From: Aplysia californica
Taxonomy: Eukaryota
Direction: 5' to 3'
Length of the DNA: 52,406 bases
NCBI RefSeq assembly: GCF_000002075.1
Contig: NW_004797426.1
Location: 392,998 to 445,403 of the forward strand
Part shown: positions 15,345 through 20,744 of the stretch, one piece after another
Position numbering within the stretch: position 1 is the first letter of the stretch
How the letters are laid out: each line of letters starts with the position of its first letter
Made by a program: the position numbers and the translations under genes
Notes under the pieces: model-generated
What the model was told of the DNA's origin: nothing
Database searches by the model: none
The model's input: only the letters and a program-made list of their open reading frames with translations

Positions 15345-15693
15345 GCACTGCCTGCCAGCCTATCAGCCTCCTCATTGCCCTTCACTTCACTTCAGAGTGC
15401 CCGGGACAGAATATCCACGTGATGGCTCTAAGTGATGAGTGTTGTATTGGGTTCATCCATTCACTCCGAAGCAGCCCTTTCTCAACCCTTCGCAGGATGC
15501 TCTGGGAGTCTGTGACAATGATGAGATGGGTAGTTCTTGGTCTTGTATTTTGAAGCCAGCCAAGCGTTCTTATTACGGCCTCAATCTCCATTTTCATGCT
15601 TGAGTTTGTTCTTTTCAAGGCCCCTGACATGCTTTGATGAACCTGTTTGACGAACGAAGTTTGTTCCCAGTGTACACTACGAAAGCCCCACCC

Positions 15694-15751
<58 letters not shown>

Positions 15752-16310
15752 GACCGATCCATCCCTGTAGATCACTGGGTCCTCTGGCTTGGAATGCTCC
15801 TCAATTAACGGTCATATGTCATTGTCGTTAATGACAGCAGCACATTCCCGTCTTCCACGACCCATAGTGATGAGAACCTTGGCCAGGCTTCTGCAATCGG
15901 GGTTCAGTTCAAACCATTCCTTTCCACAGAATATTTCATCGATGCCACAAACTGCCCTCAATGAGTCTTCAGTTTCTCCCATCCATGATCTTCCCGCTTT
16001 GATCCTGTTTCCCTTGATGCTGATTAGGTTGTCTGGAAAAGGGTGCCTCGGGTCTCCCAAAACATTCAAGTACAGCTTTGCCTGTGCCACCTTATGCCTC
16101 ACTCTGATGCTGGCCAGGTAGAGGATGTATCTCATACAGACAACATGGGTGTCCTTTGTGCAACCCAAGACAGCCCTCATAGCTGCATTCTGTACTCTCT
16201 CCAACCTGTCTATCTGAGTCTTGGACAGGGAGAGGATGCCCAGACCATAGTCTATGGTTGACAGAACAACCAGCTGCATTAGGAGTAACAGAACTCTCTG
16301 TTTAATTTCC
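15345..16310 (-). mobile_element. Truncated non-LTR retrotransposon ORF2 fragment (RT C-terminus + RNase H; I-group-like)
   Basis: LSTIDYG...LERVQNAAMRAVLG; RNase H motifs EIEAV, IIVTDSQSIL, WIFCPGHSEVK; interrupted by (CT)n at ~15697-15748. Confidence 0.8.
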
Positions 16311-16389
16311 GCTAAACAGACAGCACTAAAGACAAAACTGCGACCAAGACAATAAATAAAGCAATACCCTTTTATTGGGAGAAAAATAT

Positions 16390-16410
16390 TGGGTGGCCCT
16401 AAAAAGGGCC
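16390..16410 (-). promoter_or_regulatory. Histone mRNA 3' stem-loop GGCCCTTTTTAGGGCC-ACCCA; AATAAA/purine-rich element at 16376-16367
   Basis: Reverse complement of tgggtggccctaaaaagggcc gives a 6-bp stem, 4-nt loop and ACCCA tail matching the SLBP-binding consensus. Confidence 0.88.
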
Positions 16411-16495
16411 AGTGGTTATAAAAAAAATAAAAGAGGCGACAAAATCACCTCTCTGTCCAACGTGAGATAAATTGGCGACTTTCCTCCCAAAACCT

Positions 16496-17056
16496 TCAAG
16501 TTCCAGCGGAAGCTTTGGTTCGAGCAGGCTTCCGGTATCCCAGCTCCTGTTTCCGGTTCCGCCGGGCGAGTCTCGGAGCCGCCGTGGGGTTGGGCGCGCG
16601 AGGGTCCGCTCTGGTGCGACCTCTCTTCAGCGCCTTGTTGTTCTCCTCGGCCGTACTCCCCGGCAGGAAGATCCGGAGAATGTCCAGCCCGCCCCTGCCC
16701 AACGCCTTGGCTGCTCTCACAAACAACCAATCGGAGCTGTCGCTCTTCACGACTGCTCCCCTACGGCGGCGGGCAGGAGGCCGTTCTGGATCGCCCGAGT
16801 TCGAGTTGGACCCACGGCGCATCGCGGCGCTCTTCTTCACTTTCGCTTTGGGATTTTGCTGCGGGAGCGCCTTCCCTTTCCGGCGGCCGAGCGTTCCGGC
16901 AACGAGCTGTTTGCTACGAGTTCGCGCAGCTCTCACGGTTTCTCTGCGTGCGACGCCAAGTTGCTTCCTTCTGTAGCGGGTTCTTGGCCTGAGTCTCATG
17001 CTGGAGGAAAAGTGGCCCGGTCGGAGAGCGGTTGAGTTCTCCCCAGCCGGAGGCAT
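16496..17056 (-). CDS. Arg/Lys-rich histone H1-like / protamine-like protein, 186 aa, intronless (possibly degenerate)
   Basis: GC-rich ORF with about 34 Arg and 15 Lys. Segment LFVRAAKALGRGGLDILRIFL...NKALKRG resembles the H1 winged helix. Canonical histone 3' stem-loop 85 nt after the stop. Confidence 0.6.
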   Translation of the reverse strand: MPPAGENSTALRPGHFSSSMRLRPRTRYRRKQLGVARRETVRAARTRSKQLVAGTLGRRKGKALPQQNPKAKVKKSAAMRRGSNSNSGDPERPPARRRRGAVVKSDSSDWLFVRAAKALGRGGLDILRIFLPGSTAEENNKALKRGRTRADPRAPNPTAAPRLARRNRKQELGYRKPARTKASAGT

Positions 17057-17764
17057 TTCGCTGGCGCGACACTTCTTTCCAAGTTTGTACGGACCTCCGG
17101 GAGACACAGAGCGACGCCACACGGGAGCTGTGTTGTGCACTGTATAGGCCTATAGGTCTACACAGTAGGCCTAGGCTAGCACACTTTTGTCAGGATTAGT
17201 AAGAGTTTCACGCCACTTGCAACACAATAAAGCTGAAGATTAGAGGCGTTGCAAGGGCTGTAAAACTCTTTTATTATAAAGAAACAAAAAAGTACAATGT
17301 AAAACCCCTGTGTCCTCCAACAGTGTGACTGTGCGTGGTGGGCAGACGCTCTGATGATATCGTTGGTGTTACCTCCTTCCTTTCCTTGTTCCTACCAAAC
17401 ATCTATCGTTCTTATCTCTGCTGTTTTTCTTTTGTGGTAGTAAATTGTAGGTTGCTACTCTCTCGGTGCACTTCTTCTAATCTTCGAAACTTATACGTTA
17501 CACGACAAAATTTGTTGCAAATGCCGTAAAACTCTTTCTTAAACTATACTATATAAAACATCGTGTCTGGGTGTTTTACATATTTACAAGTCAGAAAAAA
17601 GCGTCTTCTAAATTTTTCAAGACTCACCATGAGATCTTGAAACATCTAATCAACTGAACACACACCACAAGACCCGATCCCTGCACCTAAACGCACCACG
17701 CCTGTCCGGAATTAAACAATAGAACAAACTACTCTGATCCTCCTCACCTAGCCTACCACTCCAC

Positions 17765-19564
17765 ATGGCTTTCCCAAGTCCCACAAAACCCGATATAATC
17801 AATTTCTCTCGTCCTCCTCCCTTGGGTAAGAACGGAAAAGGCATCTTCTCTCGTCACGTAGATGGCAAAAATGAGGTGAGAGGGGAGGAGGAGAGGAAGA
17901 AAATCGGTGCAGATGTTCTGCTTGGAATGGTAGAAGGAGCTCTTAGGAGAATGGAGAGGGAACATGGTTCCACCTTGCAGGTCTGTTAGACGAGTTCTTG
18001 GTTCTTCTGACTTCTCTAAGTTCTAATTATTATATAGGCCTTTCCACGATGATCCATGAAAAACAAAATTGCAGTGACACATGTAACGCGGATATGGTGG
18101 CCCCGCCCCCTGAAGAAAATTCTAAAGTCATTTTCAAGATACAGTATTTATATAATTGCATTGGAAAAAGGTTGATATGTTCTGAAACTCAAACATTTTC
18201 ACGGCAGATTTCTCCAAAACTATACTGAGCAGGTAGAACTTTAACATTCTGAGTAGGCATATTAATAACTATAGAATAATAGAAGCAAAATTAAATCTGT
18301 TCAATGCTTACTTTACCCCCCCCNNNNNNNNNNNNNNNNNNNNNNNNNNNNNNNNNNNNNNNNNNNNNNNNNNNNNNNNNNNNNNNNNNNNNNNNNNNNN
18401 NNNNNNNNNNNNNNNNNNNNNNNNNNNNNNNNNNNNNNNNNNNNNNNNNNNNNNNNNNNNNNNNNNNNNNNNNNNNNNNNNNNNNNNNNNNNNNNNNNNN
18501 NNNNNNNNNNNNNNNNNNNNNNNNNNNNNNNNNNNNNNNNNNNNNNNNNNNNNNNNNNNNNNNNNNNNNNNNNNNNNNNNNNNNNNNNNNNNNNNNNNNN
18601 NNNNNNNNNNNNNNNNNNNNNNNNNNNNNNNNNNNNNNNNNNNNNNNNNNNNNNNNNNNNNNNNNNNNNNNNNNNNNNNNNNNNNNNNNNNNNNNNNNNN
18701 NNNNNNNNNNNNNNNNNNNNNNNNNNNNNNNNNNNNNNNNNNNNNNNNNNNNNNNNNNNNNNNNNNNNNNNNNNNNNNNNNNNNNNNNNNNNNNNNNNNN
18801 NNNNNNNNNNNNNNNNNNNNNNNNNNNNNNNNNNNNNNNNNNNNNNNNNNNNNNNNNNNNNNNNNNNNNNNNNNNNNNNNNNNNNNNNNNNNNNNNNNNN
18901 NNNNNNNNNNNNNNNNNNNNNNNNNNNNNNNNNNNNNNNNNNNNNNNNNNNNNNNNNNNNNNNNNNNNNNNNNNNNNNNNNNNNNNNNNNNNNNNNNNNN
19001 NNNNNNNNNNNNNNNNNNNNNNNNNNNNNNNNNNNNNNNNNNNNNNNNNNNNNNNNNNNNNNNNNNNNNNNNNNNNNNNNNNNNNNNNNNNNNNNNNNNN
19101 NNNNNNNNNNNNNNNNNNNNNNNNNNNNNNNNNNNNNNNNNNNNNNNNNNNNNNNNNNNNNNNNNNNNNNNNNNNNNNNNNNNNNNNNNNNNNNNNNNNN
19201 NNNNNNNNNNNNNNNNNNNNNNNNNNNNNNNNNNNNNNNNNNNNNNNNNNNNNNNNNNNNNNNNNNNNNNNNNNNNNNNNNNNNNNNNNNNNNNNNNNNN
19301 NNNNNGGACATCCGGCGACACCTGGTGTCCGGTCAGCTCATCCATCAGCGCACCGACATCCGGCCGGCCGTCATCCTGGGCCTGAGGAAAGGGCGGGTAG
19401 TCCGCGCCGCTGGGGCGGTGGAGGCCGGGCTGTTGGGACGTTACGAGGTCAGAGAGGTGAGGGGAGGGCAGGTCAAGGTCAAGCCTCAGTGGAAGGCCAA
19501 GGTCAGGGGGAGACGAGCGGGGGCAACCTGCAGGAGCAGGGACCCGCGGAGCAAGAGGAAATAG
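17765..19564 (+). CDS. Linker histone H1-like (H15 domain) protein, ~157 aa; join(17765..17980,19307..19564)
   Basis: Phase-0 join of CAG|GTCTGT to ..G|GAC gives LLGMVEGALRRMEREHGSTLQ-DIRRHLVSGQLIHQRTDIRPAVILGLRKGRVVRAAGAVEAGLLGRYEV, a continuous H1 globular-domain pattern, then a short basic tail; AATAAA at 19739. The acceptor is mostly hidden in the N gap. Confidence 0.7.
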
Positions 19565-20744
19565 ACCTCTACTTGAAGTAAGAAATACTCGTCGTATTGA
19601 TTCAAGCGCCGTGTTCACCTGAATTGGCATGTCCAGTAACCTACCGTCATCTTTCTCTTTCTAACATTCAGAAACATCAGGTTTTTGAGGTGCAGAAATA
19701 TTGATTTATTGAAATTTGGAGTAAACGACATGTGTAATAATAAATGAATACCAAAGGAATCATTTTCAATTGTCATTTAGTGATAATATTATTATATTAT
19801 AGTCACNNNNNNNNNNNNNNNNNNNNNNNNNNNNNNNNNNNNNNNNNNNNNNNNNNNNNNNNNNNNNNNNNNNNNNNNNNNNNNNNNNNNNNNNNNNNNN
19901 NNNNNNNNNNNNNNNNNNNNNNNNNNNNNNNNNNNNNNNNNNNNNNNNNNNNNNNNNNNNNNNNNNNNNNNNNNNNNNNNNNNNNNNNNNNNNNNNNNNN
20001 NNNNNNNNNNNNNNNNNNNNNNGGGGGGGGGGGGGGTTTGCAAAAATACCCTGTGCCTGCTTCTCTGGTAGGAAAAAAAGTTCAACTTGAGTTCAAGGCC
20101 TTGTTAAACACAGAACATGAAAATCTTATGGTGAGGTAAATTGTAACCTCACCAAAAATTGCATGAGATATAAAAGAACGAGGAATCTAGAAGAAATCAA
20201 TTCAGAAAGGAACAAACATCAAACAGGCAACCCCTCCTCCCAACCCCCCCCCCCAACCCAAATAAATAGGAAACTTAAATTAAAATAAATTTATGAGGTA
20301 AGATACAGGATAATTTACAAAGTCAACATCCTTCTAAGACAAGGTTAAAGAAGCTTTTAAATTACTGGGGATTCAAGTAAGGGCCATCTGCACCACAGTC
20401 CAGTATGGTATCAACTGAGCTAACATTAATTAAACACTAGACTAACGCTACTGCACTCAACAAAACAGGAGGAAAAATGAGAACAACAATATAAATGAAA
20501 GTTGTAGGAATTAAATTAATTTATTCAACCTTTTTTTAGAATATTCCCTCAATATAAACAAATCGGACGTCTTGCATCGTGGACCACCTAGACAGCATCA
20601 GTAATCAGTAACAGTACCACCATACCACACACCAGGCGTAAACACCCACACAAATCCTTCAGTCATCATCAAACATTCTGAAAAAGTGGCCATTTTTTTC
20701 CTATACCCATTTCACCCGCTCAGAGTAAGAAGACAGTCACGGGC

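Follow-up and report, generated by a model that had tools for sequence, protein, structure and literature searches.

A 3' end marked by a stem-loop is held to be a hallmark of the replication-dependent histone genes of animals. The replication-independent variants of linker histone H1, such as H1.0/H5 and the oocyte form B4/H1.8, have an H15-type winged helix, a basic tail and a polyadenylated message. In molluscs, the sperm nuclear basic proteins of the PL-I type are H1-derived, basic and fast-evolving, and they are winged-helix precursors of protamines (PMC13251019). The locus described here, from Aplysia californica, touches on all of these systems. It lies in a window of 52,406 nucleotides, the whole stretch of DNA that was analysed (contig NW_004797426.1, positions 392,998 to 445,403; G000:C156:392998-445403), and it contains a minus-strand unit, gene A, and a plus-strand unit, gene B. 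These are probably two unrelated single-copy genes that diverge from one another, gene B being H15-like and gene A an orphan with a histone-type 3' end. The genome searched for comparison comprises 927,310,431 bases in 4,332 contigs, and the positions given below are those of the window.

The start codons of gene A (17056, minus strand) and gene B (17765, plus strand) diverge from a spacer of 708 bp (17057-17764), in agreement with an earlier note that read the locus, from the letters alone, as a head-to-head pair of linker-histone-like genes about 710 bp apart. Both open reading frames (ORFs) are basic and GC-rich (63.6% for gene A and 67.5% for exon 2 of gene B, versus about 40% for the window). 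The two genes have no similarity to each other, as the earlier note had it for their DNA. Its statement that the window lacks core histone genes also stands for the families searched: H2A and H4, as well as H1, were not found there, and H2B and H3 were not searched. The histone stem-loop of gene A is the only one found in the window.

Transcripts were sought in two RNA-like runs, X5 and X4, and in two poly(A) libraries. The RNA nature of X5 and X4 is a guess; X5, however, with 31.7 million letters, is too small to assemble the single-copy DNA of a 927-Mb genome and is therefore almost certainly RNA. The contigs carry no strand, and true transcript ends are not demonstrable from them. X5 and X4 each contain both genes, and the two poly(A) libraries contain neither (0 reads for gene A). 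The earlier note had allowed for a complete lack of transcripts, or for both ORFs belonging to a multi-copy transposon. Contigs exist for both genes, and gene A, as DNA and as protein, and exon 2 of gene B are each single copy in the 927 Mb.

Gene B is spliced and, by its sequence, is probably a divergent gene of the H15 winged-helix type and a distant relative of linker histone H1. Its two exons were searched separately throughout, not joined. Exon 2 finds a paralogue, L003 (G000:C131), at 43% identity (E 1e-11), an intronless ORF of 255 amino acids with a weak match to PF00538, the Linker_histone family of Pfam (16.6 bits; the cut-off is 22.4). Exon 1 aligns with helix 1 of the paralogues and exon 2 with the remainder of the domain. 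At least four other copies of this H15-like family are present in the genome, and relatives of L003 have been detected in Biomphalaria, Bulinus and Plakobranchus, where the Plakobranchus protein is named 'H15 domain-containing' in UniRef. Elsewhere in the genome the PF00538 scan showed canonical H1 clusters and several divergent single genes.

A nine-row family alignment that includes the exons of gene B was compared with the PDB, and the matches were B4/H1.8 (2e-4), the winged helix of KAT6B, H1.0, H5 and H1x, with E-values of 2e-4 to 2e-2 for the linker histones. PF00538 matches five of the nine rows (best E 8.6e-11). A word search with the family profile gave two matches only, swamped by low-complexity basic words. 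Fold modelling was done on L003, standing in for gene B. The AlphaFold model has a three-helix core (residues 101-160, pLDDT about 90) with no beta wing predicted, and its top Foldseek match is the globular domain of H1.4 (probability 0.95, rmsd 1.7 Å, TM 0.58 on the target, E 0.54); the weakness of the Foldseek E-values is put down to disorder over most of the chain. The earlier note saw winged-helix patterns in both proteins and proposed the Linker_histone profile and structure prediction as checks. With these the claim is supported for gene B, through its family profile, its family rows and its paralogue, and is not supported for gene A, which gives no Pfam match, no hhalign signal, no six-frame signal after correction for composition, and a mostly disordered model.

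The coding part of exon 1 of gene B (17765-17980, plus strand; 72 codons) encodes the N-terminal region and helix 1 and ends in ..GSTLQ, with RNA support from 17797 only. That of exon 2 (19307-19564, plus strand; 85 codons and the stop) encodes helices 2 and 3, the wing region and a basic tail of 38 residues. The intron between them (17981-19306) opens with GT at 17981-17982 and contains the whole of an assembly gap (18324-19305); the last G of the acceptor (19306) is its sole readable base. An X5 contig of 631 nt, at depth 170, runs through 17797-17979 and continues with 19306-19753. Its joint, from 17979/80 to 19306/07 with two letters ambiguous, skips the gap and keeps the frame. The spliced product reads ..GSTLQ|DIRRHL.., and a paralogue without the interruption has ..GSTLK DIRKCL.. 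in the corresponding position, so the gap hides no coding sequence. The predicted protein has 157 amino acids. Exon 2 has a GC content of 0.82 at third codon positions (GC3) and strong codon periodicity. In the 3' untranslated region (19565-19753) there is an AATAAA at 19739-19744, and the RNA contig stops 9 nt past it, at 19753, the position expected of a poly(A) site. In X4, a run whose label names a different organism although its sequence is identical, the readable part of the intron (17980-18245) is covered at depth 3-7, near the exon depth, so this library may contain RNA that is unspliced or nuclear.

Gene B is like the replication-independent H1 variants in its predicted winged helix, its basic tail and its polyadenylated message, and B4, H1.0 and H5 are the best solved relatives of its family profile. 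It is far more divergent than they are, with exons that fail PF00538. The long lysine-rich C-terminal tail of the variants is absent from gene B, where the 38 residues are arginine-rich, a mixture of R and K. The globular domain is cut by an intron, and the paralogue model lacks wing strands. The paralogues L003, L023 and L021, in contrast, are intronless and have a histone stem-loop at the 3' end, and the layout of gene B, whose domain is interrupted by an intron and whose message has a poly(A) site, would be that of a replication-independent variant. Its product would be a small basic protein, a divergent H15-type winged helix with a short basic tail, and its most likely activity is the binding of linker or nucleosomal DNA by means of the winged helix. 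With gene B, an H1-like family of heterobranch gastropods that evolves fast and has been little described gains a new member, one that is spliced and polyadenylated, and this bears on how linker histones diversify toward protamine-like proteins. Standard tools would miss it. The earlier expectation that annotation would overlook the pair is borne out to this extent, that gene B escapes such tools as an H15 gene, its exons having no Pfam match; gene A is not linker-histone-like.

Gene A is weighed here as the more important of the two. Its ORF (16499-17056, minus strand; 186 codons, 18% R, stop at 16496-16498) has no detectable fold family and looks intronless. Beyond the stop, at 16395-16410 on the minus strand, is a histone-type stem-loop, GGCCCT-TTTT-AGGGCC, followed by ACCCA. 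The Rfam model RF00032 matches at 16369-16415 with 33.0 bits (E 1.4e-6), one bit short of the gathering score of 34. In the scan of the whole genome this stem-loop ranks third, level with that of an H2A gene, and its score equals or exceeds those of the genome's own H2A, H4 and H1 genes. The earlier description of an intronless minus-strand gene with a histone stem-loop is therefore sound. Its contrast with a gene B that is intron-split and ends in AATAAA only is looser: gene B has both features, but gene A also has an AATAAA (16371-16376), which starts 18 nt after the stem. Next to it is a block, GGGTATTGC (16361-16369, minus strand), that gene A has in common with two other stem-loop genes, L032 and L003, and that is a candidate downstream processing element. 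Over the 60 nt beyond the stem, gene A is similar to L032 (z 5.7, a value reached by 0 of 300 shuffles), with no likeness to H1 or H4 genes.

Contigs of gene A occur in X5 (16610-16804 and 16850-17057) and X4 (16397-16665) at a depth of about 4. Their outer limits, 16397 and 17057, coincide with the stem-loop and the ATG, with no depth toward the AATAAA. The sequence and one contig end point to a 3' end made by the stem-loop-binding-protein pathway and not by polyadenylation; gene A would then be a unit without introns, and its message would stop at a genuine histone stem-loop. With replication-dependent histone genes it shares the intronless look and the near-consensus stem-loop with ACCCA, and one of its contigs ends at the stem. 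Gene A differs from them in that it has neither a histone fold nor an H15 domain, is situated away from the histone clusters, has an AATAAA after the stem, and has stem-loop flanks that match a non-canonical set of genes instead of the H1 cluster genes.

That set extends beyond histones. The best stem-loops in the genome follow H2A, H4 and the members of an acidic non-histone family (C358, C63, C157, C57 and C244), and non-histone ORFs were found upstream of stem-loops elsewhere in the genome. The acidic family has an N-terminal end of the type M..KKLRKLFSSC and a core ..YTPVIP.TP..F.DLS.., and its loci with high-scoring stem-loops are L025, L026 (C358), L029 (C63), L030 (C157), L031 (C57) and L032 (C244). 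Because the histone hairpin also ends non-histone genes here, the stem-loop of gene A does not make gene A a histone. Weaker matches to RF00032 (27-30 bits) at L028 (C853), L033 (C422) and L034 (C1093) belong to one repeated element with no upstream ORF, so a stem-loop-like match is not always the mark of a gene in this genome.

Two kinds of 3' module can be told apart. The first, in the H1 cluster genes, consists of GGTCCTTTTCAGGACC followed by a downstream sequence of its own. The second consists of a T-run, GGCCCTTTT(A/T)AGGGCC, ACCAAAAA and then a conserved block, either GGTATGATACAA or GGGT(A)TTGC(A)T, about 25-30 nt downstream; it occurs with ORFs that are unrelated to each other, those of the H15-like genes and those of the acidic family, and it is the kind found in gene A. 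By individual locus, GGTATGATACAA stands some 25-35 nt after the stem-loops of L023, L021, L026, L029, L030 and L031, and the variant GGGT(A)TTGC(A)T occurs in gene A, L003 and L032; canonical H1 genes differ downstream. The conserved block of the second kind is a candidate for an alternative downstream processing element. U7 small nuclear RNA, searched for with RF00066 as a possible pairing partner of the downstream blocks GGTATGATACAA and GGGTTTGCAT, was not found.

Stem-loops are missing from the L003 orthologues of Plakobranchus and Biomphalaria, so the module looks to have spread in a lineage-specific way; nor was a neighbour resembling gene A found within 4 kb of them. Gene A would belong to the set of non-histone genes that end in the histone 3' module. 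It is like the others in T-run, stem type and downstream block, especially those of L032. It differs in being basic and present once only, with a sequence unrelated to theirs, where the others are an acidic family, partly in tandem arrays. An orphan basic gene, an H15-like family and an acidic family with a common module suggest that the stem-loop-binding-protein pathway may serve a wider set of messages in this lineage.

The look-alike of the PL-I type proteins in this genome lies elsewhere. L019 (G000:C566:412376-412546, minus strand; ORF L019:1189-1731) encodes 181 amino acids, an H15 domain (PF00538, 43.7 bits) with a tail of about 80 residues of nearly pure poly-arginine, and it resembles a precursor of the protamine-like kind. 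A 10-kb stretch around it gave no stem-loop, and an ORF with an N-terminal end like that of the acidic family (L037:7654-8178, minus strand) stands in tandem beside it. Neither gene A nor gene B combines the two parts: the first is without the winged helix, the second without a long arginine tail. Nothing usable on the sperm basic proteins of Aplysia was found in the literature.

On the reading judged probable here, gene A and gene B would be transcribed outward, in opposite directions, from a common spacer of about 0.7 kb, half of it a later insertion like a miniature inverted-repeat transposable element (MITE). Several observations weigh against parts of this reading. For gene B, each exon alone is below every Pfam threshold, with no match even at E 10. 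Its RNA contigs begin at 17797 (X5) and 17802 (X4), 32-37 nt downstream of the ATG at 17765, and three out-of-frame ATGs precede the next in-frame one (17927); the N-terminus from 17765 is thus a prediction and unproven. No in-frame start other than the ATG at 17765 gives the full domain, and an in-frame stop stands just before it. A motif common to gene B and its paralogues, N.V.GEEE (residues 35-44), sits after 17797 in the same frame, and the contigs are for that reason probably truncated at the 5' end. For gene A, the 3' end depends on a single low-depth X4 contig (4.9x) that stops at 16397, inside the stem, and the strand was assigned from the orientation of stem-loop and ORF, the contigs being unstranded. 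Its codon-position periodicity is marginal (p about 0.06), its composition, rich in R, A, G and P, is that expected from any frame of DNA with 64% GC, long ORFs are present on the opposite strand as well, and it has no homologue for a test of constraint.

The last of these points would also follow if gene A were a non-coding divergent transcript of a bidirectional, CpG-rich promoter of gene B, ended by a captured histone 3' module, with the ORF a by-product of GC content. No relatives of gene A were found by word search or by a HMMER search of 1.84 billion protein representatives; two Atlas searches were blank, and the only matches to PDB sequences were chance ones to engrailed. Recognition by the language model is low, and the single-sequence AlphaFold model (pLDDT 57) is mostly disordered and of low confidence, with a few short helices. 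The CpG observed/expected ratio is 1.05, and the depth in X5 is about 40-fold below that of gene B. These fit a non-coding transcript, as do the marginal periodicity and the long frames on both strands. A stop-free run of 214 codons, however, is reached in only 0.8% of shuffles, which average 124 ± 31. The long frame is opened by the first ATG of the covered transcript, there being none upstream between 17057 and 17140, and the stem-loop and downstream block are kept as well as they are in coding genes. The non-coding explanation is on this balance somewhat unlikely, and the ORF of gene A is probably translated into a largely disordered, arginine-rich basic protein.

A more speculative proposal, and a doubtful one, is that the histone 3' module, a stem-loop with its distinct downstream block, has spread to non-histone and H15-like genes in this lineage as a separate post-transcriptional regulon. 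Gene A would then be a newly arisen, lineage-specific arginine-rich chromatin protein of this regulon that shares a bidirectional promoter with a polyadenylated H15 variant, possibly in germline packaging.

The earlier note went further in its interpretation, taking both genes as H1-derived and as a co-regulated pair of sperm nuclear basic proteins, which for gene A would demand divergence beyond recognition, for example by a frameshift that turned lysine into arginine codons. Gene A is indeed very basic, carries a histone stem-loop and stands head to head with an H15-like gene. L019, with its H15 domain and poly-arginine, indicates that a route from H1 to protamine exists in this genome, and in reviews (PMC13251019) protamines are described as cleavage products of precursors with a winged helix. 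The joint appearance of the two genes in X5 and X4, and their joint absence from the poly(A) runs, also fits such a pair. Other results speak against it. Pfam gave no match to gene A at E 10, hhalign gave a probability of 0.1% against the H15-like family, and canonical H1 and the H15-like family, compared by tblastn with the six frames of 16300-17200, gave nothing after correction for composition. Histone genes are not alone in this genome in having the stem-loop, and a divergent basic partner was found at 0 of the 4 other H15-like loci. A sperm protein pair is quite improbable in this light, and gene A is best described, from its sequence, as an orphan that is not demonstrably H1-derived. H1 motifs scattered across the frames at gene A were also considered and rejected, the only matches being to basic tails and uncorrected for composition.

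That both ORFs are parts of a multi-copy transposon, or assembly artefacts around a gap, could be suspected from a fragment of a long interspersed nuclear element (LINE) just left of the locus (15382-16279), the MITE-like repeat inside the spacer and the gaps on either side of gene B, but it is refuted by the copy-number searches, which found gene A, both as DNA and as protein, and exon 2 of gene B once each in 927 Mb, and by the independent spliced RNA contig that crosses the gap cleanly, and it deserves next to no credence.

The MITE-like repeat occupies the spacer from about 17185 to 17552, with inverted arms at 17235-17253 and 17467-17485. It is multi-copy, with 814 first-look candidates genome-wide and both orientations at the same loci. 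Since it fills this part of the spacer, the ancestral spacer was probably about half its present length. Within the spacer all reads of the poly(A) libraries fall on the repeat, and foreign reads pile up there only; other copies are abundant as transcripts in all four runs.

The LINE fragment (15382-16279, minus strand) is of the type without long terminal repeats and ends about 110 bp from the 3' end of gene A. It has a weak RNase_H match (Pfam, E 2e-4), the only Pfam match among both proteins and the neighbouring ORFs, and a reverse-transcriptase-like tail. The earlier note named GM2A and YIPF6 as neighbours of the pair; scans of the window for the ML domain and Yip1 families, which are weak for split exons, found neither. 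Homopolymers adjoin both assembly gaps, with a run of seven C (18317-18323) before the first and of fifteen G (20023-20037) after the second, and they are the likely technical cause of these gaps.

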